DNA of 64,000 bases from Ylistrum balloti (GCF_031769215.1 NW_026782269.1:682001-746000), one strand, 5' to 3'; positions 1-63,707 are shown, numbered from the stretch's first letter. Translations and numbers: made by a program. The notes: generated from the sequence alone by a model not told the origin.

Positions 1-897
1 TGAAATATATATTTTAATAGCTATATTTTCGTTAATATGTATTGTATTATTGTACCTAGCATAAATAAGACATTGAACAATTATAGAATTATGTTTATCA
101 CATAACTACCCTATTATCGGTGTATTAACACCATATACATAAATATTTCTTATAAGACATTTATAAAATGGCCTAGTGAAGCGGTGATTGACTGGAACAT
201 AGCTTCCTGGGGTCATTTAAATAGTGGCATGACATAGAGTTAGAATGATAACATTTTAGTTTTTACATCAGTTTGATATAATGCTGTTCTCTCAACGTGT
301 TATAAATGTATCCAAGTTAAGTGATAAACAGAGTCTTGAATTTTGATTTTTATCTCGCTAAATGTTTTCATATTTTGACTGGTTTAACAAATTCATATGA
401 CTGGAAACCTGTACAAGATCCTCTATTTTTGTGAAGATTGCGTAAAAGACACGTAAAAGTCAAGCACTATCTAATGCAAATTTATTCAAAGTAAGTCAGA
501 GAAGAGCTTACTATAGAATAAATTACACCAAGAAACTGTTTCATCACTTCCCTTACTTACGAGTGATACTGAGGGCCTACATTTTGAAACCCGACATACG
601 GCTGAGGGATAACAAAAGTGATCAAATGTGAAAACCTAAAAATAGGAAGATGCATTTGCCCGTAAATACCATATATTTTGAAAATTGTGGAACAACGTCA
701 AATACACGTGTATATTGTGAACAGTGCCATTCCGCAAATGAATTATAACGCGGCATGCAGGTTACAGCAAACATTGCGGACTTAAAGTCCACTTGTAGTT
801 TGACAATTGCATAACCTGATAATGGAAACTATAATTTGAAAATTAATATAACCAAATTATTATGGAAAAAGGTATAATTTAATTTCATTTTTACCAG

Positions 898-1066
898 AAT
901 CTGTTGGATATGAAGAAAAGGACAAAACATCTGCTCGAGATGATTCTACAGCGACCATCGGCAGCTGAAAAGGTCTTGGTATGCTTAGACAAGTCAGGAA
1001 ATAGTCACATAGCAAAACAGATTCGACAGCTGATTCCGAAAAAATCCGGCAATACAGCTGCAGATG
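898..1066 (+). CDS. Copy A exon: C-terminal half of CARD-like domain (NLLDMKKRTKHLLEMILQRPSAAEKVLVCLDKSGNSHIAKQIRQL)
   Basis: ttaccag acceptor and G|gtaat donor. The pattern fits CARD helices 4-6 (R.K.LL-x-L, L-x-x-L-x-x-S-G-x-x-H-I-A). Confidence 0.75.
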
Positions 1067-4000: not shown

Positions 4001-5892
4001 TTACAAAATCCGATAAAATGGTTTGTTAAACGTGCATAATTGACCACAGAAAATCATGTTCACGTTTTCCCTATTATCATCAAATTTTATGATCTTAAAC
4101 TATTTTACCTAAAGGAAACTGAGGTTAAGAATAACAAAAAAAGTTAAGCTTCTGAAAATAAAAGACAATAATTCTAATAAAAATCGCAAAAACTTCAAAT
4201 TATATATGTCGTTGTTCTGGAAGATAAATCTAATATTCCCATATGTTTATTTTTAGGTGTCGAAGCGCTATTTAGCACACTTATCTATGAATGGAGACAG
4301 TAAGTATTTTTTTTCCAAATATCTTTCGAGAAATATTGAAATGTTGGGAAATAGTACTACAGTATTACTGTATATAGTGAGTATATGTTCCACCTTTTTT
4401 TCTTCTACATCACACATTGTGACCTGTGTAGATGTCTTATAGGTATTTACCTACTGTTATTTGTAAAAATTCTACAAAATAAGTTTTAGTTTTCGTGTAT
4501 TGTACAGTGCAAGCGCTGGGCAAATTCGTCAGTTCAAAGATGGCTAACGGGCAGGAAATGCACCGTGTGTTTGTTACCATGGACACGCCGAAAACAGTGA
4601 AAGAAATAGAAGACCGTGTTGAGAGACAATGCAAGAATGACACAGATATCATCAAATACGAGACAACGCTGTTCATATGGGCAAATCAAAACAAAGACGA
4701 AAAAGACATACAGGTGACATCTCCGTATTATCAACCACGCATAAATTAAAACTATATCAGCAATCATAAATTCAGGAAATGATCATGGAAAACTTCACAT
4801 TGGTACATTTAAATAAAACTCTGGAAGGGGAAGCAATCATCATGTTAATCCAGGTTCAACAATGTAATGTAAGGTTCTCAAAATTCAGATCGAGGTAATG
4901 AACAACTGAACAACCAGACACAGAAACAAACAGACCACAAACGTAATGAACAAGGAATCCGATTGTTTTTCAATGAGTTGATGGTGATCATAAAATTTCT
5001 CCTCTTGAAAGCAACATTATTCCTTTCAACTGTTGATATCATTCAGACCATCAAATATCAAAATACATTTCGACAAGTAAACACTTTAAACTTGGATGCA
5101 GGAATTTGCTATCTTAAACGAATATTAAAATATATAATAAAAATCCAATAATCACGTCTGTATTGACAACGTAACATTTATTTGTCTCTGGGAAGTAGTA
5201 ATAACTGATTGTTTTATAGATTGAGAAGATTCTACATGCTGTTAAAAGTTACTCATGGTGTGACGAAGCCCGTCGGTTTGTCAGATTCTACACGAAATCA
5301 GGTAACAATCAGTTTGTTTTCATTGAATCTGGTCCTTTAGAGCACAGGGATGGGGCTCAAAACAGAAATGGAGGAAACACCTCAAGTGTGAAGGTTATTT
5401 ATCGATATTTGTTCTTGTTTAATCCTGAGTGAATATGACTCAATGTTACATAACCGGAAGATCTGACCTCATCGGACAAACAAGGACACGTCCGACAAGT
5501 GAAATATAGATCTTTAAAATTCATTCATATTCTTCTGTTCAGAGGTGCGGGTGGGTTATGAGGGGTTGGCAATTGTGGGTAAATGCGTTCAATTCCATCT
5601 ATTTTTTGTAGGTCTGTTCTCGGAGATGTCACTTCTGGCAATGTCAAAGCTGTTGGGGCCGGAATGGAAGGATTTGGCGGTCCTTCTGAAAATACCACAG
5701 GTGCAGATCGATTATATCAAGACCATGCAGCTCAGTGAACAAGACGCGAAGGGGAAAATGCTTGATAAGTTCCGCCTGACACACTACGCCATCGGCTTCG
5801 GCGAAAAACTTCCGGATGTATTCTTAAAGTCCCTTCAGCAGTGCAAGTGCAGTGACGAACTTCTGGCGTACGTGAAGTCGAAACTGAACTGA
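898..5892 (+). CDS. Death-fold gene copy A, 3' part (C-half of CARD - partial ZU5/UPA - DD - DD). Exons 898-1066, 2329-2455, 2758-3265, 4257-4299, 4508-4713, 5220-5301, 5612-5892
   Basis: All seven exons have AG/GT boundaries with matching phases and total 1416 nt (472 codons) with no internal stop. Every exon is conserved at the same position in copy B, while the introns diverge. Position 1 aligns with copy B 28115, so the preceding CARD exon lies just off the left edge. The donor of exon 2758 could be at 3250 or 3265 (both phase 0). Confidence 0.85.
1193..1994 (+). repeat. 46-bp intronic minisatellite (~17 units)
   Basis: Unit AGAGAAGGTCGTTATCCTTGTTACTCTATTGATGTACAGTTCCACT; the same family occurs at 28851-29213. 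Confidence 0.95.
2758..3265 (+). CDS. Copy A exon: end of ZU5 plus UPA-like domain
   Basis: QGYTRGPMELADFNVMDGETVELYMSGNI...LNFNIYVVDK...RGLLHY aligns by eye with ankyrin UPA (QENF...[21 protein letters not shown]...RLPLFVKVRD...CGRLSF). Confidence 0.7.
3266..3850 (+). repeat. ~42-bp intronic minisatellite, degenerate near the exon and homogeneous at 3490-3850
   Basis: Distal unit GTAGAAGTAACCTTTGGATGTTTATATAACAGTGATGACACT; proximal units repeat the GAGGTAACC motif. Confidence 0.85.
4508..5301 (+). CDS. Copy A death domain 1, split over exons 4508-4713 and 5220-5301
   Basis: MQALGKFVSSKMANGQEMHRVFVTM...KYETTLFIWANQNKDEKDIQIEKILHAVKSY shows a DD-like helical pattern with the L-x-x-W motif. 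Confidence 0.6.
5612..5892 (+). CDS. Copy A terminal exon: death domain 2
   Basis: LLAMSKLLGPEWKDLAVLLKIPQVQIDYIK...KMLDKFR is a typical DD (LG-x-EW-x-x-LA-x-x-L...I-D-x-I). Stop at 5890-5892. Confidence 0.85.
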
Positions 5893-15391: not shown

Positions 15392-15665
15392 ATGGGAACA
15401 CAACGTGACATTCCTGCCATAAAACTATTGACAGGATTATCCCGGGAATGGACCGGCATAACCAGTCCTACCAAATCTACAATAGAAGAGGCACAGCGGT
15501 ACCAGTCATGTGTTAATGATCTGACTGCGAAGACCTCGGACGGCATCACGAAGGTCAAAGGTTATGTTGAGGATGTGAACGAGGAAATAAGTGCAATAAG
15601 AGACAACGTGAAGAGGTCAATGATAGAGAGCGTGCAGATAATGTCGGATCTCGTCAAAAAATTAG
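15392..15665 (+). CDS. Copy B first visible coding exon, predicted helical
   Basis: ttttgcag acceptor at 15381. MGTQRDIPAIKLLTG...IMSDLVKKL. Donors at 15665 (phase 1) or 15669 (phase 2). Confidence 0.65.
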
Positions 15666-18600
15666 GTAGGTAAACCTCTCATCGATATCAGGGACACGGC
15701 TTATGAGTACGAATAAGTAATACCCTAAGATATAATAGGTACATATTATACAAACAGTTTTGTTTTCCTTCAAGGATTAACTCTATCATTTCCTTCTACA
15801 AAACCAACATAGACAGCTTTCCACCAAGCTGTATGATAAACGTGATGATTTCAATTTCCCTTTTGAAAATTTTCCATTTCTTGATAGCAGCATCTCTATA
15901 CCCCCAAACCTATGGTGTTTACATGATACAGTTGATTCGAAATTCAAGTGCCTTTTACCATTAGCACGATTTGCGTGCAAGTTGTTCAATATATGTATTC
16001 ATCTTATCAACTTGTAGAAGCACTTTGTAGGGAACTAGATGAGATGTGTCCTATTTCCAGTTAGGAGTCCTGTTAGTATTTGTATGAAGTCAAACGTAAG
16101 AAGTTCGACATTTGATAGCGCTATTTCAGATCAAGATAACGGTATTCATTACTAACAACATCAGGCTTTAAAGTCGATACTCAGTTAGATTTTTCAAATT
16201 TGTTTTAAATGAAACTTTTAGAATCAACTTCAGTAGGCGCATATTATACCCCTTATTTTATGTCATTGTTGATAAAGAGAGGTTAAGTAGATTTTATAGT
16301 GTGAGGAATATTGTCATATTGTCATGGTTATTATAATTGAAATTGAAATTCCACAGTCGTCAACTGAAGGACAAAATCGAAACAGGTTTTCAAACGATGC
16401 AGGTCGATACGAAATATGGGAAAGTTTTACCGTCGTCATAGTGATCTCATCGTAAAATATTCTATTTCTTTGTGCGATATGTAGTTGGATGTGTTTGGTA
16501 CTCCTTAGTTTGCCAGTTCGTTCCGTTGTTGTACGTCTTGTTCTCATTTGAAAATGTGACTTTTCTTACTTGGATTGATCACGATTTACATGGTAGGCGT
16601 TTTTAGTACAAACTAAACTAAAACAATATTTAAAAGTCCATGATTAGAAATGATAACATATTTAGGTAAATGACATCAGGTGAGCCATACACACTCATTA
16701 ACTGTAGTCTATTTTCCCTAACAGTCCCGACACCTAGTAGCCAACAGAAGCATGGTTATGGTCAAGTCAGAGACGATGGGAAATCGTAAGTACTTAAAGC
16801 TTGATTTTATACATAAACGTGAGAAATACAGATAAAATATTGAAACATTGAAGGCATAGGACATGGATATTTCTTAGAGGTGGCAACATAGCAACAAATT
16901 CTACAGTAAGAGCTATAGATTGATCCATGTATACGTGAATCAATAAGTGGGTCAATATTAGCACATATATCCAATGTTGATAATACTAGCACGGAAATAC
17001 TTTCTATGGTTAACTTAATTTCATGGAACGTTCATTAACTCCAGGTATTTATCCTTATCAGCATTGCCTCTAGAGTTTAACGATAGTAAATTAAAAGATA
17101 TCATATATTACATGAAGTAACATGACCACTGATTGAAAGTTTGTTTGCTGTTTATACATCAACGTTGGTATACCTGGTGCATCTATCCACTGCTTATACT
17201 GAAATACTAGGTCTGTTTGATTTAAATTCCATTGCATTTAAGAAAAATCCGTTTATGTCATGTCTATACACAACAAAATAATGTAAAAGAATTTATTATC
17301 GCTCGGCTAGAGCCAAACACACAGCATGTCAACAGGTCAATATAACGGTAATATTTCGTCAGGTGTGTGGGGTTCACTGTCATCATAGCTATCTCTAATA
17401 TGCAATGTGTTAAGGCAGTTGTCTGTGAAATGTCCCAGTCATGTGTAATTATTATTGTTGTTGTATGGCGTAACTGTTTTGTTTACAGCACAACTTTCTG
17501 GATTTCCCCCCGCATAGACCAAAACTGAAAATGACCGACTTTTTTTTTTACATTTTAGAATTAAGATCAGATATGTGATCCAGAAGTAAACAAGTTGCCA
17601 AATACCTACCAAGCCTCTTGTTTTGCATGTTGTTTAGAATCAGTATAATTGAAAAGATTTTATAAAAATATGATTTTGATTACAATTTTTAATCGTCCCT
17701 TTGATATTACAACATGACTTGCATCATTCTACGAAGTTGCGATGTCACAGCACGGATTAAGATATAGATGTATTTGAATCCGTGGTTACAGTGATAAAGT
17801 ATATGTCAGCGCCTATGTAAAGTATACAATTGCAATCTTGATGACCAAGACGCAATGGTAATAACCATATTGATCTTTGCCACAGACACACAGGGTTGGG
17901 ATATGACAGGGTTTTGTTATGCGATTTTTCACTGTGTATAGAACAAACCTGGAATGAGTTTGATTCTGTTTTAATAATGATGAAGTTTTCTAAGTATTTA
18001 TACATGTACAGCGTTGGTAAAGTTGGTACTTCCGTGGAGCGCATGCTAGGCGTGTCAGGGTAAATGTTTTTCGTATATTGATGTTCTTGTCCAAAACAAT
18101 CTTAAATTTACTGATAATCACATTGGGAGGTAAAACAAAACCACCAACAAATAAGTCCATTCCGTCTTGAATTCTTTATTATATCGAACTACTGATTGAA
18201 GACTAGCATATTGTTGATTAATCCTTAATTACTATTATTGATTTTTGGAAAATTTGTGCCGTTTGTATGCTTTTTATCGTCTTAATTAAGGTCTTTTTTT
18301 CTTGTGTAAGACCATTTAGTACAGATATTTTTTTCTCCAGTGGTTCATTTGGATATGGCGCTGCCAAGGAATCGTAAGTACTTTACAATTATCGACCTGT
18401 ATTGAAGTTATCAACCCCGAGGTTTATCAGGGATAGGGAAAACACAGTCATGCTAAAATAAAAAAAAAATAGGAAATTGATATGTTGTTGATCCGTGTAA
18501 TATCGATTCAGTAATATTAAATCGTACATTATTCTCATCAACTTATCGGAATATCTGCTTCATAATAACTTATTGTGATCCATCTACCTCGTAAATTTTG

Positions 18601-21600
18601 AGTGAATAAAATGGATTAAAACAATATACTCAAGCAAATCGTTTGAGCTGGCATGTAAACACACCACATTAAAGTAGTTTTAAATGTTTGATTTACAGTT
18701 AGTTGTGGAATAAAATATCTTGTTGTAAAACACTTGAAGCATTCTCTGTAACTAAAACGCGCAATAACTAGTTTCTCAATGGTTTTTGTAAACATTTGTT
18801 CTTTATCTTTTAAGTTATAAGTTGTAATAAGTTACAATGTCGCTATGTATTTATGAAATTGTTAGTTTTGCATATCAATTATCAGCGTTTCGCTAACTGC
18901 CATATCATCCCGCTCCAACTGATGACATAAACTTTATTTATTTTACAACCATTGCGAAACAAGCTTTAAGCTTATATTAATCACTATTCTTGGCCCTGAT
19001 GAAAGTGCGCGAGTGGTCTTACTATGGGTAGAAACCACCTAACCCGGAGAAATCCCACGTGATTCGGGCAGGTGACCTCATACCTTTCACGTCCGTTCCC
19101 GGAATTGAACCACAGACGCCTAGATGAAAGGCGTGTGTTACAACTGACTACCCGACCACCCGGTGGCGTTAACAAGACACATGTTGGTACAGAAGAGGTC
19201 GTTTAAATTTCAGATTAGCTCTTTCATTGTGGAGAAAACAGGTCACACAAACTTGCGGTCGTGGTATATTGAATTTCTTTCACTCTAGTTTTTTTTTCAA
19301 AAGTTTAAAAAAAAACCTAAATCTGATGTTTTTGTAATTTTTGGAACAAAATAAGTAACGAGAGTAAAAGAAATACCGCATACCAAAACCCGTTGTTTAG
19401 TAACCACTTCTAAGTTAAAGTATTTATGTAGGGAAACAGCCCGCAGAAGTAATGAAGAAATCGCAAAACAACTAGCGGAACTTGCGAAGTTCACTGAGCG
19501 ACAACAAAAACTGGTTTCTCTCACTGAAAACGTCAATTCTGCATGTGAAAAGGTTCAGTCACAGGAAGGAATAGATGACAATGATATCAGAGACTTACAA
19601 AGTGCAGTCGATGGGTATGGCAAGACATTAGAGAACGAAAAGGAACGGAAGGACAGACAGGAAAAGATGAAGAAACGAGAAGAGGAGGAAAAACGACGAA
19701 GAAATCCTGAAAACTGGAAACCTTTAGTGTAAGAATTCTTAATCAATTGTGATAAATCTATGATGGTGTTCTGAATTGTCTAAAAACAACAACGAAATAC
19801 CGACATTATGACATAATCTTAACTTAAACACAAAACTAGGAAACTATGACAGAATATTAACATAAATAAAAATAGACAGAGATTCCTGATACAGTTTAAG
19901 GAGAATAAGACCAAATGTTTCGAAAGAGCAAGCGTCTTCCGCGATGTTAATCTTTGTCAATCCGAGAAAATTATGCTATGTTCACAAATGATAACATTAT
20001 ATACAACAACGGAACAAATCGGCAATCTAATGGGCATCAAACACGTCAAGCTTTATGCCGCACCAACAAAAATTAGAATATTTCTCAATGCAATTATAAT
20101 GACTGTAAAACGTCCATATAGCCTTTATCAACCTTACTAATTCTCTATCTTACTTTTATGAGTACCATCGATATATAATATGCAAGAATTTACGATTGAA
20201 TTGAAACAAATTTATTGACATATCAATAAATATATATACATATTTGTATATATGACAAAGGGATTGGACTTCAGACATAGCCTATTTAAGCCCTCTCCCA
20301 CACTTAATCTTGATTAATCCTTAATTACTGTTATTGATTTTTGGAAAATTTGTGCCGTTTGTATGCTTTTTATCGTCTTAATTAAGGTCTTTTTTTCTTG
20401 TGTAAGACCATTTAGTACAGATATTTTTTTCTCCAGTGGTTCATTTGGATATGGCGCTGCCAAGGAATCGTAAGTACTTTACAATTATCGACCTGTATTG
20501 AAGTTATCAACCCCGAGGTTTATCAGGGATAGGGAAAACACAGTCATGCTAAAATAAAAAAAAATAGGAAATTGATATGTTGTTGATCCGTGTAATATGG
20601 ATTCAGTAATATTAAATCGTACATTATTCTCATCAACTTATCGGAATATCTGCTTCATAATAACTTATTGTGATCCATCTACCTCGTAAATTTTGAGTGA
20701 ATAAAATGGATTAAAACAATATACTCAAGCAAATCGTTTGAGCTGGCATGTAAACACACCACATTAAAGTAGTTTTAAATGTTTGATTTACAGTTAGTTG
20801 TGGAATAAAATATCTTGTTGTAAAACACTTGAAGCATTCTCTGTAACTAAAACGCGCAATAACTAGTTTCTCAATGGTTTTTGTAAACATTTGTTCTTTA
20901 TCTTTTAAGTTATAAGTTGTAATAAGTTACAATGTCGCTATGTATTTATGAAATTGTTAGTTTTGCATATCAATTATCAGCGTTTCGCTAACTGCCATAT
21001 CATCCCGCTCCAACTGATGACATAAACTTTATTTATTTTACAACCATTGCGAAACAAGCTTTAAGCTTATATTAATCACTATTCTTGGCCCTGATGAAAG
21101 TGCGCGAGTGGTCTTACTATGGGTAGAAACCACCTAACCCGGAGAAATCCCACGTGATTCGGGCAGGTGACCTCATACCTTTCACGTCCGTTCCCGGAAT
21201 TGAACCACAGACGCCTAGATGAAAGGCGTGTGTTACAACTGACTACCCGACCACCCGGTGGCGTTAACAAGACACATGTTGGTACAGAAGAGGTCGTTTA
21301 AATTTCAGATTAGCTCTTTCATTGTGGAGAAAACAGGTCACACAAACTTGCGGTCGTGGTATATTGAATTTCTTTCACTCTAGTTTTTTTTTCAAAAGTT
21401 TAAAAAAAAACCTAAATCTGATGTTTTTGTAATTTTTGGAACAAAATAAGTAACGAGAGTAAAAGAAATACCGCATACCAAAACCCGTTGTTTAGTAACC
21501 ACTTCTAAGTTAAAGTATTTATGTAGGGAAACAGCCCGCAGAAGTAATGAAGAAATCGCAAAACAACTAGCGGAACTTGCGAAGTTCACTGAGCGACAAC

Positions 21601-24600
21601 AAAAACTGGTTTCTCTCACTGAAAACGTCAATTCTGCATGTGAAAAGGTTCAGTCACAGGAAGGAATAGATGACAATGATATCAGAGACTTACAAAGTGC
21701 AGTCGATGGGTATGGCAAGACATTAGAGAACGAAAAGGAACGGAAGGACAGACAGGAAAAGATGAAGAAACGAGAAGAGGAGGAAAAACGACGAAGAAAT
21801 CCTGAAAACTGGAAACCTTTAGTGTAAGAATTCTTAATCAATTGTGATAAATCTATGATGGTGTTCTGAATTGTCTAAAAACAACAACGAAATACCGACA
21901 TTATGACATAATCTTAACTTAAACACAAAACTAGGAAACTATGACAGAATATTAACATAAATAAAAATAGACAGAGATTCCTGATACAGTTTAAGGAGAA
22001 TAAGACCAAATGTTTCGAAAGAGCAAGCGTCTTCCGCGATGTTAATCTTTGTCAATCCGAGAAAATTATGCTATGTTCACAAATGATAACATTATATACA
22101 ACAACGGAACAAATCGGCAATCTAATGGGCATCAAACACGTCAAGCTTTATGCCGCACCAACAAAAATTAGAATATTTCTCAATGCAATTATAATGACTG
22201 TAAAACGTCCATATAGCCTTTATCAACCTTACTAATTCTCTATCTTACTTTTATGAGTACCATCGATATATAATATGCAAGAATTTACGATTGAATTGAA
22301 ACAAATTTATTGACATATCAATAAATATATATACATATTTGTATATATGACAAAGGGATTGGACATCAGACATAGCCTATTTAAGCCCTCTCCCACACTT
22401 AATCTTGATTAATCCTTAATTACTATTATTGATTTTTGGAAAATTTGTGCCGTTTGTATGCTTTTTATCGTCTTAATTAAGGTCTTTTTTTCTTGTGTAA
22501 GACCATTTAGTACAGATATTTTTTTCTCCAGTGGTTCATTTGGATATGGCGCTGCCAAGGAATCGTAAGTACTTTACAATTATCGACCTGTATTGAAGTT
22601 ATCAACCCCGAGGTTTATCAGGGATAGGGAAAACACAGTCATGCTAAAATAAAAAAAAAATAGGAAATTGATATGTTGTTGATCCGTGTAATATCGATTC
22701 AGTAATATTAAATCGTACATTATTCTCATCAACTTATCGGAATATCTGCTTCATAATAACTTATTGTGATCCATCTACCTCGTAAATTTTGAGTGAATAA
22801 AATGGATTAAAACAATATACTCAAGCAAATCGTTTGAGCTGGCATGTAAACACACCACATTAAAGTAGTTTTAAATGTTTGATTTACAGTTAGTTGTGGA
22901 ATAAAATATCTTGTTGTAAAACACTTGAAGCATTCTCTGTAACTAAAACGCGCAATAACTAGTTTCTCAATGGTTTTTGTAAACATTTGTTCTTTATCTT
23001 TTAAGTTATAAGTTGTAATAAGTTACAATGTCGCTATGTATTTATGAAATTGTTAGTTTTGCATATCAATTATCAGCGTTTCGCTAACTGCCATATCATC
23101 CCGCTCCAACTGATGACATAAACTTTATTTATTTTACAACCATTGCGAAACAAGCTTTAAGCTTATATTAATCACTATTCTTGGCCCTGATGAAAGTGCG
23201 CGAGTGGTCTTACTATGGGTAGAAACCACCTAACCCGGAGAAATCCCACGTGATTCGGGCAGGTGACCTCATACCTTTCACGTCCGTTCCCGGAATTGAA
23301 CCACAGACGCCTAGATGAAAGGCGTGTGTTACAACTGACTACCCGACCACCCGGTGGCGTTAACAAGACACATGTTGGTACAGAAGAGGTCGTTTAAATT
23401 TCAGATTAGCTCTTTCATTGTGGAGAAAACAGGTCACACAAACTTGCGGTCGTGGTATATTGAATTTCTTTCACTCTAGTTTTTTTTTCAAAAGTTTAAA
23501 AAAAAACCTAAATCTGATGTTTTTGTAATTTTTGGAACAAAATAAGTAACGAGAGTAAAAGAAATACCGCATACCAAAACCCGTTGTTTAGTAACCACTT
23601 CTAAGTTAAAGTATTTATGTAGGGAAACAGCCCGCAGAAGTAATGAAGAAATCGCAAAACAACTAGCGGAACTTGCGAAGTTCACTGAGCGACAACAAAA
23701 ACTGGTTTCTCTCACTGAAAACGTCAATTCTGCATGTGAAAAGGTTCAGTCACAGGAAGGAATAGATGACAATGATATCAGAGACTTACAAAGTGCAGTC
23801 GATGGGTATGGCAAGACATTAGAGAACGAAAAGGAACGGAAGGACAGACAGGAAAAGATGAAGAAACGAGAAGAGGAGGAAAAACGACGAAGAAATCCTG
23901 AAAACTGGAAACCTTTAGTGTAAGAATTCTTAATCAATTGTGATAAATCTATGATGGTGTTCTGAATTGTCTAAAAACAACAACGAAATACCGACATTAT
24001 GACATAATCTTAACTTAAACACAAAACTAGGAAACTATGACAGAATATTAACATAAATAAAAATAGACAGAGATTCCTGATACAGTTTAAGGAGAATAAG
24101 ACCAAATGTTTCGAAAGAGCAAGCGTCTTCCGCGATGTTAATCTTTGTCAATCCGAGAAAATTATGCTATGTTCACAAATGATAACATTATATACAACAA
24201 CGGAACAAATCGGCAATCTAATGGGCATCAAACACGTCAAGCTTTATGCCGCACCAACAAAAATTAGAATATTTCTCAATGCAATTATAATGACTGTAAA
24301 ACGTCCATATAGCCTTTATCAACCTTACTAATTCTCTATCTTACTTTTATGAGTACCATCGATATATAATATGCAAGAATTTACGATTGAATTGAAACAA
24401 ATTTATTGACATATCAATATATATATATACATATTTGTATATATGACAAAGGGATTGGACATCAGACATAGCCTATTTAAGCCCTCTCCCACACTTAACA
24501 TCACAGTGGTACATGACAATATATATACACTTTAATCATTGCATACTAATAAAGCAGTATAACACAAGGAAAACACGCTTATCTACTGAAATATAATTTT

Positions 24601-27600
24601 ACCTAATCATAATTTTTCCGCTCTGAACCTTACTTGATTACAATATTTTTAATCTCTACTTAAATACACGGACATTTTAAAATGTATATTATTTTAATGT
24701 TGCAGGTTTATGGACAACGCACCTCAGGAAGACGCATTCACTAACACTGATATATTGTGTGTGATTTATGCCATGGACGGGAGCTTCCAGACCACCTCGC
24801 TCCAGTGCAATAACATGGAAAGCCGGATCACGATGTCAGATTGGTTGGATACACGATATGAAGAGCAAGCGTCAAGTCCGATTTTGATGAACGGTTATAG
24901 CAATGTGGCGGTAAATCTGGAGGTTCGTACTGATAAATCATCTATTGGTGACTATCGATGTACAGGTAGCATTTTAACAAAAAATTAACCGACAAAAGGT
25001 TTTTTTTTAAACATATTTAATTTTCACCTTTTGAGGACTAGCTTAAGAACGATTTAATTTTTGGTGTCGTTTTCTGTTTCAATTATTTTTCTTTAATGGT
25101 AGAATGTCTGATGTCTAATACAAGTCTCCTCACTAAGGTCTGTGAGACTTTCAACCTATGGATATTTCATTTGTTTTTGGAACTCAAGAACCGTTCGTGA
25201 CATTTCAACTAACACGAACGATACATTAAATACAATAATCTGAGAAATTTCAATAATGATTTTGTTTGTATGTGCTAACAAATAAGGAGCCGATGGAAGT
25301 GTACGTGCCATATTCGATCGATGGAATCAAGCACGAGCCAGAGGTCAAGATCTCAATCGACAATGGACCCTGGACGTCCCCGGATATACTCACCGAAAGG
25401 AAAGTTAAGGCCTTTCAGGTACGTTAACCTCTGTTTGTTATTAAACCTTCTGATACAGACATCCGTATTTAAATATCAGGTTGCATGTAGTGGTCCAGGC
25501 GATTTATGTTGTGACAACTAGCTTTTTTGGCATGTCGATATATTTACCTATTTACCTTTTTGTGTTTTATTGTCTCCTCTTAGACAACCATGTGTAAAGT
25601 AGTTACATTTTCTGTGGTAGTAATTATGAAAGGTAGTCATAGTGTCCTGGGGTAGTAATTATGAAAGGTGGTTATAGTTTCCAGAAGTTCTTATGAAGGG
25701 TGATTATACTTTCCTGGTGTAGCACTTATGAAAAGTAGTTACATTTTCCTGGGTAAGTAATTATAAAAGGTGATTATAGTTTACTGAGGTAGTAATTATA
25801 AAAGGTGCTTATAGTTTACTGAGGTAGTAATTATAAAAGGTGCTTATAGTTTACTGAGGTAGTAATTATAAAAGGTGCTTATAGTTTACTGAGGTAGTAA
25901 TTGTACAAGGTGGTTATAGTTTACCGAGGTAGTAATTATAAAAGGTGGTTATAGTTTCCAGAAGTTCTTATGATGGGTGATTATACTTTCCTGGTGTAGT
26001 CCTTATGAAAAGTAGTTACATTTTCCTGGGTAAGTAATTATAAAAGGTAGTTATAGTTTACTGAGGTAGTAATTATAAAAGGTGGTTACATTTTCCTTGG
26101 GTAGTACTTATTAAAGGTTACAATTCCTGGGTTAGTAATTATGAAAGGTGGTTACATTTTCCTGGGTTAGTAATTATGAAAGGTGGTTACAGTTTTCTGT
26201 TGTAGTGATAATGAAAAGTGGTTACAGTTCCTGAGGTAGTACTTATGAAAGGCGGTTACAGTTCCTGAGGTAGTACTTATGAAAGGCGGTTATAGTTCCT
26301 GAGTTAGTACTTATGAAAGGTGGTTATATTTTTCTGTGCTAGTGATAATGAAAAGTGATACTGTTTATAAATAGCAGCTCAGACATTAGGTGAATGTAAG
26401 ACATGGATCGTGGTAATTACTTTGTGAGTTGACTGGTATTAGGATTAGGATTAAGACGATGTGATGCATTATGACAATAAGCAAAAACGTTTTTGTCAGA
26501 TCGTGGTTTCATTACATAAGCGAAAACTCTTACGCAACACTTAATAGGATTCATTTATTTAATAAATTTAGAGAATTTAATGAATACATTATCAATGTTT
26601 AATCCAACTATGGTTGAATCCTTCATTTACAGAAAGGGGTCAAGTACATTGGGACTACAGTTGAAAGCTTCAGGTCAGTTAGAATAATAGTAGCCGCTGT
26701 AAACAAGGGAAAAAAGATAAAAGTCGACAAAAATGGTTCGACCTTCAAGGAAGACTGTATGCAGTTCCAGGTTCCTCCAGGGTGCGGGAATGACAATATC
26801 AAGATCAATGTAAGTTACACGTTAATTTGATTCGTTTTAACGGCCCATCCATAACTTCTAACATCAAAACAAAGAAGTCTTGTGTGTTGGTACGTATTAA
26901 TGTTATAAAGTAAACATGTATTTTGTCTACAGGTATCAACTGATAATGGAACAAATATGGCACGACAGAAGAAGTTTCTTGGCGCTCAGGTACGCGTAGA
27001 AGTCGACTGTGGGCAAAAAACAACGAAGGACATCAATGTCAAGATATCAGAGGATAAGAGTGAGTAAAAAAAACAAACAAAACAAAAACACAACACTTCT
27101 CATCAATCTAAAACATAACAAACAGTTATATAGTTATCCTTCAAAGGTACCAACGAAAACCTAGATCAAAATTTACATGGAGATCATTGGAAAATACATG
27201 ATGGAAGACCAGGTGATTTAGAAGGGTAAGTCTGTTTAACATAATGATGGCACGCCATGAAATGATAAATATGTAATACCATGTTCTCAAAATCAGAACG
27301 GGTTTAGTAACAGATAATAAAATCAGGCATTCTAATCATGATAACGACTAACATATTCCAATTCATATAGGCTTCAGCACCTCTTGGTTTTATGTGCTTT
27401 GGTCAGCACACGTCCTGAATCAAGGAAAACTTGAGAATGAACTACACTATTTATATCACAGGTTTAGGAAGCAAGGTTTTTGCTATCGAAAAATAAAAAA
27501 AATCATTACAGGTAATTAATAATCATTCAAATGCTTCGAAAACAGCCCCCTTGACTGCGTTGTAGGTTGATGGAAGTAGATTTAAAGGATTAAGCCCGGT

Positions 27601-30600
27601 CCTTTATTTCTAAATCTGGTCGGTAGAAATGATTAATATAAAAACTTATATTTAAAGATATCACTCATATACCTTAAAGTGAAACTTATTTAGTAGGGTG
27701 TTTATGATATATGTTTTGTAGTACATTTTTGCAATTGAATCCAGTAGAGTTGGAGGATAACGCAGATAATTGCTTTTTTTATAGTAAACAATAAGCATAT
27801 TACTGAAATGTTATTTCCTGCAGAACAACTGACTTCATCGTGTTTTTGTTACAGTGTCGTCTCACTGTAATGAAAGGAAAGCGGCTTGCAATATTTGAAT
27901 ATTTGAAGGAAATCAACCTGGTATTATCTACTGCTTTCATCTCATTTTTTTATAGTGTTGTCTCACTGTAAGGAACGGAAGGAGGCTTGCAATGCCCTGA
28001 ACGAACTGGTTACGTCTGGAAATGATCTTTCTAACATCAAACTGGATCCTTTACTTGAGCACTTACAGAGAGATGGCGTGATCAACACTAAGGAAGCAAA
28101 CGATAACAAAGTACTGAAATACATATTATAGTATCTATATATTCAGTGATATGTATATATTATTGTACCAAACATAAATAACACATTGAACAATTATATA
28201 AAGTAATGTTGTCATTCAAATAAGTATCAGTTATGACACATATGTAATATGACCTATCGCTGGTTTGATTGGCTCAGTTTTGATGAAGTGTTTCATGGCA
28301 TCTTATGCTGATTAAACAATGAGACATGGAGGGAGAAAATGGACATTTACGATTTTGGATTAGTTTAATTAGATGTTGTAGTCATGAATGTTTGCAAAAA
28401 AAAGTTATGTGATAAACAGAATCTTATGTTTGCTTCCGTCTCATATTAGATTAATAAAAGTCTTCGTGCAACTGTACTTCCATTATTTCACAACACGATT
28501 ATAAAAATTATAATTTCTAAATTTAGATGAAACACAAACGTTATTCAGAAAGGTGCCATTTATTATTTTTTTACTAGAATCTGATGGATATACAAAAAAG
28601 GACGAAACATCTGCTGGAGATGATTCTACAGCGACCATCGGCAGCTGAAAAGGTCCTGGTATGCTTGGACAAATCAGGAAATAGTCACATAGCAAAACAG
28701 ATTCGAGAGTTGATTCCGAAAAAGTCCGGCAATACAGCTGTATATGGTAATGTTGAATACTGACACTGTATAAATGGTCTATTGAGTCACACTATTAACA
28801 TTCAGAGTACCATTTTTTTTCAGGTACACATTTATATGTTCCATATGTTTGGAAAAGTCGTTATCCTTATTACTATATTGATGTACAGTTCCACTAGAGA
28901 AGGTCGTTATCCTTGTTACTCTATTGATGTACAGTTCCACTAGAGAAGGTCGTTATCCTTGTTACTCTGTTGATGTACAATTCCACTAGAGAAGGTCGTT
29001 ATCCTTGTTACTCTATTGATGTACAGTTCCACTAGAGAAGGTCGTTATCCTTGTTACTCTATTGATGTACAGTTCCACTAGAGAAGGTCGTTATCCTTGT
29101 TACTCTATTGATGTACAGTTACACTAGAGAAGGTCGTTATCCATGTTACTCTGTTGGTATACAATAACACTAGAGAAGGTCTTTATTATTGTAATCCTAT
29201 TGATGTACACTTACACGTTTATATAACTTCCAATATATCTTATCAATAACACCATACAGTAAACTCCAGGGACAAACTAATGAGCGCCAGATACACGTCG
29301 ATGATCCTGTATTATTTTTTTTATGTTACCAGTGTAATTTAGTGTAAAACTAAATCATATCTGAATTTACTTATCTAACTGCTACTGTATTCTAAATCCG
29401 TGTTTTTTCGTTTTCACTAAGATTTTTTTTTACATGGTTGATAACTGTTTCTTTGTGCTTTTTGCTCAGTTTCAATTGTGGTTATGTCAATTGGTCTTTT
29501 TAAATAACACTATAATAATATTATTCTTTTCACAGAAAAATGGCGTTCGGTATTAGTTTTCACTGGGGATGATGGAAAGTGGAAAGTGCTTGATCCAAAA
29601 GTCATAAAAAAGCTTTATAAAGAACTAGGATTTATCTTAGAGGCGGGGAACAGACGTTTTGAGTAAGTTTTTCTAAGGTTTATTCTCCTGGGTACATCAT
29701 CAGTGTTAAAAAAATATGTATGTTAATCTTAAAAATCGTGCATGTTTACCTTGCTCCCATTTTGGAAAGTGACATTCCTTACTTGGACATCAATATTTAA
29801 ATGGCGGGTGTTGTTGATGAAGCAGTAGACACTTATTCTTCCGGAACACCTGGTCCTATTATCCTTGTATTTTTCAGGAATCTCCGTGTAAATTTTTCTT
29901 TTGTTCATGTTTTGGATTAAGATTCTGTTTTTGTTGGTATTTTCTTTCTTGTTATATAAGGAGCTAAGCAGTTGTGATTTGTACAATCTTAAATATCACA
30001 ATGCCAGAATACACCAATCTAACCGGCTGGTTCAGTTCGTGTCATTTTGCGAGAGAAGGGTGTTTTCTGTCTTTAACAATGCCTGAGGTAAACAGCAAGA
30101 ACCAATCTTATGATGGAAAAACCGGATGAGTACCGACTGGAAAATGGAATAATGTTTCTACTTCTGATTTATGATAGATAGATGAATTTGTGTATCGGGA
30201 GGATGCAAGATGAAATTTTATTATATACAAGTTATCACAAATACTTATATGTATCTGCAATCTGTACAGGTTGATATCCCTGACCATCTCTGATGACACG
30301 TCTGAGAAAGATATTGGAGAAATCGCCAATGAGATTAGAAACCGGGAGATTGGTACGACCGTAACACTGGTCTGCAGGCATAAAACAGACGACTATCAAG
30401 CCGAAAGCTTTGTGCACGTCCTTTCATCGAAGCAAGCATCAAGGGAAATCATTCGACTGAAAGAACAAGGATACACCAGAGGCCCAATGGAGTTGGCAGA
30501 CTTTAATATCATGGACGGGGAAATCGTCGAGTTGTATATGTCTGGTAATATCGGACTGGAGTACAAAGGTAGAAGGTTACAACAAGGAACGGTAACGGGC

Positions 30601-33021
30601 TTACTATACAAAGCCCATAAAGACGTTTGCAAACTGAACTTTAATATATACGTCGTGAACAAGACATCTCCAGGTCAAATGGATGACGACAGGTATCGAG
30701 GACTGCTTCATTACAGAGTCAGAGCTAGAGCACCTCTTAAGGAGAGGACTGACGAGGTCGAGGTAACCTGGCTAAAGGTGAGATTGGAAATGAAGTAAGG
30801 GTATTCTGGCTAAAGGGGAGATATTATGACTAATGAAGTCGGGGTGATCTGACTAAAAGTAAAATTGTAGTCGAGGTCGAGGTATCTGACTAAAGTTGAG
30901 ATAGTAGAACTGTTGAATTCGAGGGGACCTGGACAAATTTGAGATAGTAGGACTGATGAAGGCGAAGTTACTTGGCTAAAGGTAAGGCTGCAATCGAGGT
31001 CGAGATAGCCTGGCTAACGGGTTTTGTAAGACTGACGAGGCCAAGGTAACCTGTCTTAAGGTGACTTTGCAGGACTAATGAGGTCAAGGTGGCCTAGCTA
31101 ATGGTGATACAGGAGGAATGAAATGGTCAGGGTAAACTAAATGAATGTGAAATTATAAACGAGCATCGAAGTCAAGATAACTTGATTGTTGCACGGTTGA
31201 GGTATCAAGACTAAAGGTGAAATCATAGAACTGTTAATGTAGAGGTAATCTTGCTTCAGGTCCGACAGAAGTATTGATGAAGTTGATGATTTCTTACCAG
31301 AGGTGAATATAATAATGTGATATAGTTATAAGGGAAACTGTAGGTAGAGTGTGCTCATCACCAATCCCTAAACCAGCATAGAAATACGAATGCGTTTTAT
31401 ATGTTTCCATTTTAGGTGTCGAAGCGCTATTTATCACACTTGTCCATGAATGGCGACAGTAAGTATTTATCAAGATTGTTTTAATAAAAACAATGATTCT
31501 TTAAAGTTGACCAATTTTTTTTCTGCAGTTCATTTCAAACCATTATATCCTTAGATACATCAGTGTTATTGTCACTTTACTTTGTAATTAAACTTGTTTT
31601 TACTTCACACATTGTCACATGTGTACGTGTCTCATATAATTATTTACTTGTTGTTATTTGTATAAATACTACAAATTATAATACGTTTGAGTTTTTAACA
31701 TATTTCGTGTATTGTACAGTGCAAGCGCTGGGCAAATTCGTCAGTTCAAAGATGGCTAACAGAGAAGAATATCATCAAATACGAGACAACGCTGTTCATA
31801 TGGGCAAATCAAAACAAAGACGAAAAAGACATACAGGTGAAAACTATGAGGTTGAAATATTCACTAAATACCGCCCATACAAGAAAACGTTATTCTAACC
31901 CGCTAACATCATAATAAGGAAATGATCAAGGCAGACTTCTCATTGGGGTCCTAAAACAATCACCATGTTAATACGAACTGTAATGTTACGTTCTCAAAAT
32001 GAGAAATTTGTAACCAATAACTAAATAACCATACCCCAAATGAATCAGATTAATTTCCAGCGAGATCCTGATCATAAAATTTCGTCTCTCAAAATCCTCT
32101 GTTGTCCACATTATCATTCAAACCATGAAATAGCAAAATCGATTATGCAATTCAAACAATGTAGTTATGGGAAGCAGGAGGTTACTATCTTAAAAAGTAA
32201 ATTCAAATATGAAAAAAACCAAATGATCACATCGGAATCGACAACGTAACATTTATTTGTCACTAAGAAGTAGTAATATCTGATTGTTTTGTAGATTGAG
32301 AAGATTCTACATGCAGTTAAAAGTTACTCGTGGTGTGACGAAGCTCGTCGGTTTGTCAGATTATACATGGAGTCAGGTAATCATTAGATTGTTTTCATTG
32401 AATCTGGTCCTTAAGGGCACAGGGATGGGGCTCAGAAGGGAACTAGATCAAAAGTTTTAATATCGTTCTCCTTTAGGGTCACTGAATACTTTACTTGTTT
32501 GCTCAGGAGAAATGAAGGGGACATAACCGGAAGGTCTCACCTCTTTAGAGGAAGGACACGTCCAACCAGGAAAATATCATTTTTGAAAATTAATATTTTT
32601 TTTCAGAGGGAATGAGTTAATCATGTTTCGTCTGAAACAATGATGATTAAAATGTTCTAAACTCGGTATGAACTTTGGGTCTGGTCTCCTGCGGTACATA
32701 GGGGCTCTCTGTAGGGGAATAGAGTGATGTCTTTCAGTCTACATCACATTATTATTGATTTCACGATTTGACAGGAACAGTTTAAATGAAGGAGAATTAG
32801 TTAAAATGGAGAATCTTTGGGTTTTTATTGTAGGTCTATCTATCTCCTATAAAAATCATTATCGGAGATCGTGTCCGATCTAGATCACGTCACATATCTA
32901 AATGTGTAAACATTTATCTAAAAGAGTCATACGGAATGGAAGTATGCATAGTGACAAAATGAAATGTTTTCTAGGATCGGACTGTTAAACAACTAGACGA
33001 GCAGCAGAAATATCTCAGTGG

Positions 33022-33056
<35 letters not shown>

Positions 33057-35460
33057 TGGTTGTATGGGTGTCTGTANNNNNNNNNNNNNNNNNNNNNNNN
33101 NNNNNNNNNNNNNNNNNNNNNNNNNNNNNNNNNNNNNNNNNNNNNNNNNNNNNNNNNNNNNNNNNNNNNNNNNNNNNNNNNNNNNNNNNNNNNNNNNNNN
33201 NNNNNNNNNNAAATGTGCCAATACAGTACATGTGTGTGTTAGGAGCTGTACATATACAGTACATGTGTGTGTTAGGAGCTGTACATATACAGTACATGTG
33301 TGTGTCTGTATGGAACTGTACCTATACAGTACATGTGTGTGTCTGTATGGAACTGTACCTATACACTACATGTGTGTGTCTGTATGGAACTGTACCTATA
33401 CAGTACAGGTGTGTGTCTGTATGGAACTGTACCTATACAGTACATGTTGGTGAGTCTGTATAGAACTGTACCTATACAGTACATGTGTGTGTGTCTGCAT
33501 GGAACTGTACCTATACTGTACATGTGTGTGTGTATCTGTATGGAACTGTACCTATACAGTACATGTTGGTGAGTCTGTATAGAACTGTACCTATACAGTA
33601 CATGTGTGTGTGTGTGTCTGTATGGAACTGTACCTATACAGTACATGTGTGTGTGTGTGTCTGTATGGAACTGTACCTATACTGTACATGTGTGTGTGAG
33701 TCTGTATAGAACTGTACCTATACAGTACATGTTGGTGAGTCTGTATAGAACTGTACCTATACAGTACATGTGTGTGTGTGTCTGTATAGAACTGTACCTA
33801 TACAGTACATGTGTGTGTGTGTCTGTATAGAACTGTACCTATACAGTTCATGTGTGTGTGTGTCTGTATAGAACTGTACCTATACAGTACATGTGTGTGT
33901 GTATAGAACTGTACCTATACAGTACATGTGTGTGTGTGTGTCTGTATGGAACTGTACCTATACTGTACATGTGTGTGTGTGCATCTGTATGGAACTGTAC
34001 CTATACAGTACATGTGTGTGTGTGTCTGTATAGAACTGTACCTATACAGTACATGTGTGTGTGTGTCTGTATAGAACTGTACCTATACAGTTCATGTGTG
34101 TGTGTGTCTGTATAGAACTGTACCTATACAGTACATGTGTGTGTGTGTGTATAGAACTGTACCTATACAGTACATGTGTGTGTGTGTCTGTATGGAACTG
34201 TACCTATACTGTACATGTGTGTGTGTGCATCTGTATGGAACTGTACCTATACAGTACATGTGTGTGTGTCTGTATAGAACTGTACCTATACAGTACATGT
34301 TGGTGTGTCTGTATGGAACTGTACCTATACAGTACATGTTGATGAGTCTATATAGAACTGTACCTATACTGTACATGTTGGTGAGTCTGTATAGAACTGT
34401 ACCTATACAGTACACGCGTGTGTCTGTATAGAACTGTACCTATACAGTACATGTGTGTGTGTGTGTCTGTATAGAACTGTACCTATACAGTACATGTGTG
34501 TGTGTGTGTGTCTGTATGGAACTGTACCTATACAGTACATGTGTGTGTGTGTCTGTATGGAACTGTACCTATACAGTACATGTGTGTGTGTGTCTGTATG
34601 GAACTGTATCTATACAGTACATGTGTGTGTGTGTCTGTATGGAACTGTACCTATACAGTACATGTGTGTGTGTCTCTCTGTATGGAAGTATTCACATACT
34701 GTGGATGTGTTGATATATGCGACAAAATCTACCCATTATTTATATAGATTTACCTGATATTCTGATTTTCTGTTACACATTTTTATATTTGACATGTTTA
34801 GTTAGTGTTTTCCGTCTTAAAAATATATGACGTCAAAGCCGGGTTGTAAGATTACTAATAGCTAAAAGATCACATAGTGGTCATGGGATCTAGTTTACAG
34901 TTTACAGACTAAATTTTCCAATTAATCAAGGGAGTTGAACTTACCTTTTATATGTGTTTCGTTTCAATGAATAAACAAACACATTTTTCAATGTATTACA
35001 AAATGTAGCATCAAGATTGTTGAACAACGAATATCGATAACGTAGGTCAATGACATCAATGACGAGTCTCAGATCGAAGAAAATTATAGTTTTATCATGT
35101 TGAATTTTTCTCTTATGTCTAAAGCTAAATCGATATCTGACAATACTGTCTGTTCCTCAATCCGATCGATCTTTTATAGGTCTGTTCTCGGAGCTGTCGC
35201 TTCTGGGAATGTCGAAGCTGTTGGGGCCGGAATGGAAAGACTTGGCGGTTGTCCTTAAACTACCACAAGTGCAGCTGGATTATATCGAGCATATGCAGCT
35301 CAGTGAACAAGACGCGAAGGGGAAAATGCTTGATAAGTTCCGCCTGTCACACTACGCTATCGGCTTCGGCGAGAAACTTTCGGAAGTATTCTTGGAGTCC
35401 CTTCAGCGGTGCAAGTGCAGTGACGAACTTCTGGCGTACGTGAAGTCGAAAATGAAGTGA
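15392..35460 (+). CDS. Death-fold gene copy B (helical/coiled-coil x3 - ZU5 - ZU5 - CARD - partial ZU5/UPA - frameshifted DD1 - DD2). Exons 15392-15665, 16725-16785, 18012-18059, [18341-18373, 19432-19728], [20437-20469, 21527-21823], [22532-22564, 23623-23919], 24706-24910, 25287-25418, 26633-26809, 26933-27059, 27147-27225, 27378-27511, 27956-28110, 28578-28746, 29536-29662, 30270-30777, 31416-31458, 31720-31836, 32295-32376, 35180-35460
   Basis: The phases chain consistently and stop-free from ATG 15392 to exon 31416-31458. Exons from 28578 onward are paralogous to copy A. The small upstream exons are less certain, and further 5' exons may exist (acceptor at 15381). An N gap lies in the last intron. 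Confidence 0.7.
18984..19167 (-). mobile_element. tRNA-derived SINE with a V-domain-like core (also 21079-21262 and 23175-23358)
   Basis: The reverse complement has an A-box-like head, a perfect anticodon-type stem CGCCT-TTCATCT-AGGCG and B box GTTCAATTCC. It then has GTGGGATTTCTCCGGGT..GGTTTC.ACCCA, resembling the V-SINE core. Confidence 0.75.
19432..19728 (+). CDS. Copy B 297-nt phase 2-2 coiled-coil exon (identical copies at 21527-21823 and 23623-23919)
   Basis: tatgtag|G...GT|gtaag. ETARRSNEEIAKQLAELAKFTERQQKL...EKERKDRQEKMKKREEEEKRRRN. The minus-strand ORFs in the track are its antisense shadows. Confidence 0.75.
24706..27511 (+). CDS. Copy B exons encoding two ZU5-like domains
   Basis: EEQASSPILM...EPMEVYVPY...EPEVKISIDNGPW...TVESFRSVRII and KIKVDKNGSTF...QFQVPPG...IKINV...TSWFYVLW resemble tandem ZU5 repeats of PIDD/ankyrin/DTHD1. 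Confidence 0.55.
25590..26357 (+). repeat. ~35-bp intronic minisatellite with an internal block duplication
   Basis: Unit GTAGTAATTATAAAAGGTGCTTATAGTTTACTGAG; the block at ~25681 is repeated at ~25959. Confidence 0.9.
27956..28746 (+). CDS. Copy B CARD-like domain (exons 27956-28110 and 28578-28746)
   Basis: LSNIKLDPLLEHLQRDGVINTKEANDNKNLMDIQKRTKHLLEMILQRPSAAEKVLVCLDKSGNSHIAKQIRE matches the CARD pattern (LD-x-LL-x-x-L-x-x-x-GVI...K-x-x-LL). Confidence 0.75.
28851..29213 (+). repeat. 46-bp minisatellite (~8 units), counterpart of 1193-1994
   Basis: Same unit in the equivalent intron. Confidence 0.93.
30270..30777 (+). CDS. Copy B ZU5-end/UPA exon
   Basis: Same 508-nt length as copy A 2758-3265, open frame, highly similar protein. 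Confidence 0.8.
30778..31310 (+). repeat. Degenerate ~41-43-bp repeat of the exon/intron junction motif
   Basis: Recurrent GAGGTCGAGGT(A/G)..CTGGCTAAAGGTGA...GGACTGA variants. Confidence 0.7.
31720..31836 (+). pseudogene. Copy B DD1 exon with a net 89-nt frameshifting deletion
   Basis: 117 nt versus 206 nt in copy A. The 97 nt at 4549-4645 are replaced by AGAGAAGA. Splicing to 32295 gives a stop at 32297-32299. Confidence 0.85.
33022..33056 (+). repeat. (GAT)n microsatellite
   Basis: Direct read; it produces the spurious poly-M/poly-H/poly-S ORFs. Confidence 0.95.
33077..33210. other. Assembly gap (N)
   Basis: Run of N. Confidence 1.
33211..34690 (+). repeat. Compound minisatellite: conserved core plus variable (TG)n
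   Basis: Unit GTCTGTAT(G/A)GAACTGTACCTATACAGTACAT(GT)n. Confidence 0.95.
35180..35460 (+). CDS. Copy B terminal exon: intact death domain 2
   Basis: Same 281-nt length as 5612-5892, open frame, mostly conservative substitutions. Confidence 0.8.
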
Positions 35461-63547: not shown

Positions 63548-63707
63548 NNNNNNNNNNNNNNNNNNNNNNNNNNNNNNNNNNNNNNNNNNNNNNNNNNNNN
63601 NNNNNNNNNNNNNNNNNNNNNNNNNNNNNNNNNNNNNNNNNNNNNNNNNNNNNNNNNNNNNNNNNNNNNNNNNNNNNNNNNNNNNNNNNNNNNNNNNNNN
63701 NNNNNNN
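63548..63707. other. Assembly gap (N)
   Basis: Run of N. Confidence 1.

Follow-up and report, generated by a model that had tools for sequence, protein, structure and literature searches.

A CARD Inside a ZU5 Domain: Predicted Architecture of a Coiled-Coil, ZU5-UPA and Tandem Death Domain Protein Family in Scallops

Domain Architecture

The DNA analyzed here, referred to as the window, is a stretch of 64,000 nucleotides of the scallop Ylistrum balloti (GCF_031769215.1 NW_026782269.1:682001-746000), given as one strand and numbered from its first letter. Self-comparison, together with the DNA upstream of the window, revealed two tandem paralogs on the plus strand, copy A at -5817..5889 (negative positions lie upstream of the window start) and copy B at 15392-35460, and it is copy B that is under study. 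Both belong to a small group of bivalve proteins, clear in scallops and more distant in mussels, whose architecture is real and conserved in scallops and, as modeled, probably runs coiled coil - ZU5N - ZU5C with a caspase recruitment domain (CARD) inside it - UPA - first death domain (DD1) - second death domain (DD2) over about 950 residues of a cytosolic protein. On the structural model the CARD interrupts the second ZU5 domain, that is, it appears as a domain insertion into ZU5C. The original prediction, made from the sequence of the window, had instead placed an extra ZU5 half after the CARD; this half-domain falls away, as the strands at residues 536-588 complete the second ZU5. The two C-terminal death domains that it proposed are found in the family, DD2 by Pfam and structure and DD1 by structure, but in copy B itself DD1 is disrupted and DD2 cannot be translated unless exons are skipped.

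Domains were assigned on an AlphaFold2 model of the copy A protein (P0018), built from an 11-sequence alignment, and those of copy B were inferred from copy A, the two being 77% identical overall. Mean pLDDT is 69, with values mostly of 70-90 in the domains. The N-terminus of the copy A protein is helical, and no signal or membrane segment was detected in it. A beta-rich region (205-421) is followed in the model by six helices (423-522), further strands (536-583) and a mixed domain (588-744), and the C-terminus consists of two six-helix bundles (758-850 and 860-947). In a Foldseek search of the PDB the first match is the ZU5-ZU5-UPA-DD structure of ankyrin-B (4d8o, E 2.8e-11), with the ZU5-ZU5-UPA of AnkB/AnkG, the ZU5-UPA-DD of UNC5b and the ZU5A-ZU5B of ankyrin-R coming next. 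VIA-align places 4d8o on model residues 205-746 with Z 11.1 over 368 residues, which supports the ZU5-ZU5-UPA core that had been proposed. Because the ankyrin-R ZU5A-ZU5B pair aligns across model residues 205-601 (Z 9.3, 260 residues), the strands after the CARD appear to complete ZU5C, whose two parts, of 74 and 53 residues, have together the size of one ZU5 domain. The UPA region matches 7jn7_C (Z 9.2), 7crw_A (Z 9.0) and 6x6a_G (Z 8.8).

The CARD, also called in the original prediction, is borne out by the copy A model: CARDs make up eight of the top ten VIA-align matches, the first six being Apaf-1 CARD chains (Z 11.2-11.7, with about 90 of 92 residues aligned), and the top match has an rmsd of 2.6 A over 91 of 92 residues at 20% identity. 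DD1 folded alone yields six helices at a pLDDT of 83, and in a comparison with 48,161 PDB chains nearly all of the 50 matches listed are death-fold chains, the best named ones being the DDs of FADD (Z 10.9), RAIDD (Z 9.2) and AnkG (Z 8.9). No sequence relation is detectable by hhalign between DD1 and DD2 or between the CARD and DD2, and it is thus structure that carries the death-fold call for DD1. The tandem CARDs of RIG-I (2CARD) align with model residues 760-947 at Z 7.9. Neighbors in the ESM Atlas comprise ZU5/UPA/Death, DTHD1, FIIND-CARD, PIDD-like LRR-ZU5-Death and ankyrin-3 clusters; bacterial SRA-like clusters, returned at low scores by a feature search with the UPA exon, were rejected as noise.

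Sequence profiles see far less of this layout. Pfam Death (PF00531) matches exon 14 of copy B with 27.3 bits (E 4e-6) and copy A with 26.8 bits, above the cut-off of 22.6, and is present in 8 of the 11 family members; the family profile also retrieves the RIPK1 DD. For the CARD (PF00619), copy A scores 18.5 bits (E 0.002), and 6 of the 11 members show the domain at E <0.1. Among the same 11 members Pfam ZU5 and UPA were not matched at E up to 0.1. Searches of the PDB with sequence profiles of the CARD and DD1 sub-alignments returned no CARD and nothing relevant. One weak Pfam match to Ig_TgrO1, on single exons of both copies, was treated as noise. The domain-match check suggested with the original prediction thus succeeds for the death domain and for the folds (AlphaFold, copy A), leaves the CARD below threshold in Pfam, and fails for ZU5 and UPA in Pfam. 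With nothing but Death and a sub-threshold CARD visible to Pfam, the family would escape architecture searches of the CDART kind.

A search with exon 10, the largest exon, found two sites only in the 648-Mb assembly, copies A and B. Used as a protein query (175 residues) against 1.84 billion representative proteins, the same exon retrieved a few weak relatives and three strong full-length ones, the latter listed in RefSeq as "uncharacterized proteins" (Pecten maximus, Mizuhopecten yessoensis, Argopecten irradians). Orthologs in these three genera have 905-981 amino acids and an identical order of segments, which is collinear in eight models of scallop proteins, representing four genera. Mytilus has distant relatives (22-24% identity), and further homolog searches added just one more, P0021 of Mytilus edulis. 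The genes form tandem clusters of two in Ylistrum, two in Pecten and at least five in Argopecten, and copies A and B are sisters in the family tree (support 100/99). The original prediction did not recognize the architecture, and our literature search found no paper describing a layout with a CARD in ZU5 and two DDs; the proteins themselves are already RefSeq entries, but only as "uncharacterized."

Gene Structure and Exon Cassettes

The window has a GC content of about 35%, with short open stretches between repeats, which fits an animal gene with introns. Copy B exons were mapped by tblastn with the Pecten maximus ortholog P0001 and by comparison with copy A, junctions being transferred through the A/B alignment. 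Fourteen exon types result, or 16 exons when all copies of exon 2 are counted, all with GT-AG borders and matching phases (Table 1). The phase-consistent exon chain of the original prediction is accordingly right in describing a multi-exon plus-strand gene over this interval, but its frame breaks at exon 12, before DD2. Of the two junctions singled out for confirmation, 28746>29536 is supported by copy A and by ortholog mapping. For 27511>27956 the acceptor at 27956 is confirmed, but the donor at 27511 lacks an equivalent in copy A and the orthologs, and conservation points to 27059>27956 instead. The same lack of an equivalent holds for the whole open stretch of intron 6 to which that donor would belong (27352-27516, plus strand); it is not a high-copy repeat, and we take it to be open by chance.

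Copy B spans 20 kb, as against 11.7 kb for copy A, because of tandem arrays such as the 35-bp/172-bp array that fills intron 4 (25608-26357). Exon 2 is triplicated within 2.1-kb tandem units (18214-24498, 99.7-99.9% identical), and its three copies are identical and keep the frame. In exon 1 the site homologous to the copy A donor has been lost (GG), and the donor used here, AG|GTAAAC at 15669, occurs in copy B only. Intron 8 of both copies holds a 46-bp tandem repeat (28857-29216 and 1186-2007), longer in copy A; its depth of several hundred in a DNA run from another individual marks it as satellite-like and genome-wide. In intron 11 (31468-31703) one contig of the other-individual DNA run skips 234 bp, probably through an indel polymorphism rather than splicing.

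The assembly gap in intron 13 has a (GAT)n microsatellite (33015-33056) on one side and a tandem array with about 35 copies of a 41-bp unit (33231-34687) on the other, and these repeats probably caused it. Both splice sites of the intron, donor 32376 and acceptor 35180, are in phase 1, as in copy A, where the intron measures 310 nt. The joining of exon 14 to exon 13 across the gap would follow from collinearity with copy A and the orthologs, not from spanning reads.

The CARD is encoded by exons 7 and 8 (324 nt), flanked by phase-1 introns, and DD1 by exons 12 and 13, likewise a phase 1-1 cassette (288 nt in copy A); DD2 starts in phase 1. Modules flanked by phase 1-1 introns are a classic signature of exon shuffling or duplication. 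The origin by exon shuffling or fusion put forward in the original prediction thus keeps its basis in the two cassettes, and is plausible as an insertion of the CARD into ZU5C, but not as the addition of a half-domain. Where the scallop proteins have the CARD, the Mytilus relatives have a helical insert of equal length, which could not be assigned to that domain: the hhalign probability is <1%, Pfam finds no CARD in it and the ESM Atlas gives nothing.

These cassettes bear also on the suspicion that the CARD within ZU5 is an artefact of gene prediction, with CARD exons from a nested or alternative transcript merged into the chain by several RefSeq models. Exons 7 and 8 form an in-frame cassette that could be skipped, searches for RNA runs brought up only a DNA data set, and one Argopecten irradians model, P0019, is without the second CARD half, which is replaced by a short unrelated stretch at residues ~545-568; this oddity may reflect an alternative exon 8 or a prediction error. 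Against an artefact, exon order, phases and lengths are equal in both Ylistrum copies and the models of the other scallops are collinear with them, the CARD exons have neither a start codon of their own nor a promoter-proximal context, the CARD has a dN/dS of 0.36, and the Mytilus insert matches in length and position. We regard the artefact as very unlikely.

Lesions and Selection in the Tandem Pair

Copy A corresponds to RefSeq LOC132554269 (P0018), the two agreeing residue for residue once a single base of exon 3 is skipped; the 5' exons of copy A fall before the window start. In exon 3 (-3056..-2848) a 1-nt insertion (GGGAAGC, vs GGGAGC in copy B) breaks the frame, and as RefSeq corrected this frameshift the protein is flagged "LOW QUALITY PROTEIN." The lesion of copy B lies further downstream. 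Its exon 12 has 117 nt vs 206 nt in copy A (4508-4713), and the alignment shows a clean 89-bp deletion, which removes helices 2-3 of DD1 and shifts the frame, so that a stop within exon 13 precedes DD2. Up to and including exon 12 the frame stays open from exon 1 onward. Since exons 12 and 13 total 288 nt in copy A, skipping both restores the frame in copy B: exon 11 then joins exon 14 in frame and reaches the intact DD2, which would give a single-DD isoform. As assembled, copy B would encode either a truncated coiled-coil-ZU5-CARD-UPA protein devoid of death domains or be a young pseudogene.

Selection was compared between the two copies. The dN/dS lies between 0.31 and 0.51 in every domain (CARD 0.36, DD2 0.31), and both copies have therefore been under purifying selection for most of their history. 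The dS between them is 0.82 for the coiled coil but drops to 0.10 for the UPA, a pattern suggestive of gene conversion over the 3' half or else of a duplication of mosaic age.

We give almost even weight to the scenario in which copy B is a recently inactivated pseudogene, the full protein being made from copy A or from neither copy and the architecture belonging to the family rather than to this locus. The frameshifting deletion with its downstream stop, the lost exon 1 donor, introns swollen with tandem arrays and a triplicated exon 2 all fit it, and no copy B protein from RefSeq turned up in any protein search. A DNA run from another individual, examined over 27300-32600, has SNPs and intronic indels, none of which restores the 89 bp; contigs break nearby, so that this is not decisive. 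However, all 16 exons have GT-AG borders, the frame remains open up to the deletion, a replacement donor is present for exon 1, skipping exons 12 and 13 brings back the frame, and the dN/dS values speak for constraint during most of the time since duplication. As copy B is a damaged paralog, copy A and the orthologs of Pecten and Argopecten are the better starting points for functional work.

Comparison With Known Systems and Proposed Function

ZU5-UPA modules gate death-fold signaling in PIDD1, NLRP1 and CARD8, and in ankyrins they scaffold the cytoskeleton. The best overall structural match to the scallop protein is provided by ankyrin-B, -G and -R (4d8o, 6m3q, 3ud1), which share with it the order and folds of ZU5N, ZU5C, UPA and a following DD. 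Unlike ankyrins, it has an N-terminal coiled coil instead of ankyrin repeats, a CARD inside ZU5C and two DDs, not one; identity is only 10-15%, with Pfam ZU5 and UPA silent. UNC5 (3g5b; Foldseek E 9.8e-6, VIA-align Z 9.5) has the ZU5-UPA-DD order in common with it but differs from the scallop protein in being a transmembrane netrin receptor that lacks a CARD and has only one ZU5. DTHD1 provides the nearest ESM Atlas structural cluster (TM 0.39, 372 residues over 205-916), and a mollusc "DTHD1-like" cluster is among the feature neighbors; the scores are low and serve as leads only, and DTHD1-type clusters have no CARD among their listed families.

With PIDD1 (LRR-ZU5-ZU5-UPA-DD) the scallop protein shares the ZU5-ZU5-UPA-DD core. 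The fold of DD2 is like the DDs of PIDD and RAIDD (Z 11.0), PIDD-like LRR+ZU5+Death clusters are among the nearest ESM Atlas structures, and the content of RAIDD/CRADD (CARD-DD) is matched by the scallop CARD and DD in one chain. Unlike in PIDD1, residues 1-200 are modeled as long helices and not as LRR, for which Pfam finds no match in the 11 family members. A motif check of the junction alignment found the HFS autoproteolysis motif of PIDD absent at both ZU5 ends: the end of ZU5C reads RRFE-LIS or RHFD-LVS, with no F-S/T pair, and the ZU5N/ZU5C border reads SFKSFR, with no Ser after Phe. Unlike the PIDDosome, the scallop protein would carry its CARD in cis, and any recruitment of caspase-2 by it is hypothetical.

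NLRP1 and CARD8 are the only well-studied proteins with ZU5, UPA and CARD in one chain; they share the UPA fold, and their FIIND-CARD clusters are among the ESM Atlas feature neighbors. In these proteins the CARD follows the UPA and is freed by self-cleavage at SF/S (PMC3210808). The scallop CARD (432-524), unlike theirs, lies upstream of the UPA (600-746), inside ZU5C, and the DDs come after the UPA; in the alignment the SF/S motif of the FIIND is absent at the ZU5-UPA junction.

From these likenesses we infer an oligomerizing death-fold adaptor: (i) the coiled coil would multimerize the protein, (ii) docking to other DD proteins would go through the death domains, and (iii) the CARD would recruit a CARD-bearing caspase, making the protein a one-chain analog of PIDD and RAIDD. 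A self-contained PIDDosome-like platform, as suggested in the original prediction, is thus a hypothesis about function. The ZU5-UPA module probably keeps the death-fold domains closed, as in ankyrin-B and UNC5b; a self-cleaving switch is unlikely because both the HFS and the SF/S motifs are absent. Alternatively, the UPA could assist in clustering the CARD, as it does in CARD8 and NLRP1 (PMC7794386). A more specific version, which we consider unlikely in its full form, is a coiled-coil-driven "PIDDosome in cis" of pteriomorph bivalves, in which the embedded CARD would recruit a caspase-2-like initiator, the tandem DDs would receive an upstream signal and a change in the conformation of ZU5C, not self-cleavage, would uncover the CARD. 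If true, such gating by ZU5C would be a new way of controlling a death-fold domain, and the protein would stand in for the PIDD that lophotrochozoans are reported to lack. That absence comes from a survey by sequence, which also proposed a caspase-2/CRADD pathway in molluscs (PMC11463336). The blindness of profiles to this architecture may partly explain why the survey found no PIDD-like activator, and the family, revealed only by structure comparison, is a candidate for the missing scaffold of a caspase-2/CRADD-type pathway in bivalves. It also illustrates clearly how a domain is inserted by way of phase 1-1 exon cassettes.

A competing proposal is a structural or cytoskeletal adaptor of the DTHD1 or ankyrin kind, with the CARD and DDs serving intramolecular packing or unrelated contacts. 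The nearest ESM Atlas structural clusters are indeed "death domain-containing protein 1" and ankyrin-3, the top VIA-align match of DD1 is a chain of the central apparatus of the mouse sperm axoneme, and the self-cleavage motif is absent. Moreover, in ankyrin-B and UNC5b the ZU5-UPA-DD unit is a closed supramodule not involved in caspase signaling. On the other hand, the CARD is closest to the apoptosome-type CARDs of Apaf-1 (19-20% identity) and CED-4, death-fold domains act by homotypic assembly, and small lineage-specific tandem clusters are typical of immune and apoptosis genes in bivalves. We judge a purely structural role to be fairly unlikely.

Several points weigh against the death-fold adaptor and the architecture on which it builds. 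The pTM of the model is 0.42 and its alignment is shallow (11 sequences), so that the packing of the domains is unreliable. Even the best Pfam CARD score (P0001, 22.5 bits, E 1.2e-4) is under the gathering cut-off of 23.9 bits, and Pfam ZU5 (PF00791) and UPA (PF17217/PF17809) have no match in copy A residues 205-350 and 534-750 at E up to 10. The junctions of copy B rest on homology and on RefSeq models of other species, no RNA run with this locus having been found. The missing self-cleavage motifs remove the best-understood activation mechanism of PIDD, NLRP1 and CARD8. Finally, both assembled copies carry frame-breaking lesions, and the family may be decaying in this species, unless these are assembly errors.

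Features of the Window

Table 1. Exons, gap and modeled domains of the tandem pair. Positions are nucleotides of the window unless given as residues, which refer to the copy A model.
Feature	Position	Strand	Basis
Copy A, 3' part, in window	898..5892	+	homology to copy B, P0018 mapping
Copy A exons in window	898-1066, 2329-2455, 2758-3265, 4257-4299, 4508-4713 (intact DD1), 5220-5301, 5612-5892	+	
Copy B exon 1, start codon and first part of N-terminal coiled coil	15392-15669	+	tblastn P0001, A/B alignment, frame check
Copy B exon 2, first copy, 297 nt, phase 2-2, coiled coil	19432-19728	+	homology, frame check
Copy B exon 2, second copy, in frame if spliced in	21527-21823	+	
Copy B exon 2, third copy, in frame if spliced in	23623-23919	+	
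Copy B exon 3, ZU5N start	24706-24922	+	homology; model 205-347 vs ankyrin ZU5N
Copy B exon 4, ZU5N	25287-25418	+	homology, model
Copy B exon 5, ZU5N end and ZU5C start	26633-26809	+	homology, model
Copy B exon 6, ZU5C before insertion; phase-1 intron next	26933-27059	+	homology, phases
Copy B exon 7, CARD N-terminal half	27956-28110	+	homology, model
Copy B exon 8, CARD C-terminal half	28578-28746	+	homology, model
Copy B exon 9, strands predicted to complete ZU5C after CARD	29536-29662	+	homology; ankyrin-R ZU5A-ZU5B vs model 205-601
Copy B exon 10, last ZU5C strand and UPA	30270-30777	+	homology; model 600-746
Copy B exon 11, UPA-DD1 linker	31416-31458	+	homology
Copy B exon 12, DD1 remnant	31720-31836	+	A/B alignment, frame check
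Copy B exon 13, DD1 end, out of frame, holds premature stop	32295-32376	+	homology, frame check
Assembly gap (N) in intron 13 (32377-35179)	33077-33210	.	no coding sequence adjoins
Copy B exon 14, DD2 and stop codon, intact open frame	35180-35460	+	Pfam Death E 4e-6
Coiled coil (long helices 8-200)	residues 1-200		
ZU5N	residues 205-347		ankyrin ZU5N, Z 6.9-7.0
ZU5C, split by CARD	residues 348-421 and 536-588		
CARD, Apaf-1-like	residues 432-524		Apaf-1 CARD, Z 11.7
UPA	residues 600-746		CARD8/NLRP1 UPA, Z 8.8-9.2, ~120 residues
DD1	residues 758-850		FADD DD, Z 10.9
DD2	residues 856-948		RAIDD and PIDD DD, Z 11.0 (model 847-948); Pfam Death

A second assembly gap (63548-63707) lies near the end of the window, outside copy B. 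Downstream of copy B the window also contains two single-exon paralogs of galactose-3-O-sulfotransferase on the minus strand (36758-37870 and 46649-47896; PF06990, E ~1e-41), which are unrelated to the death-fold genes.

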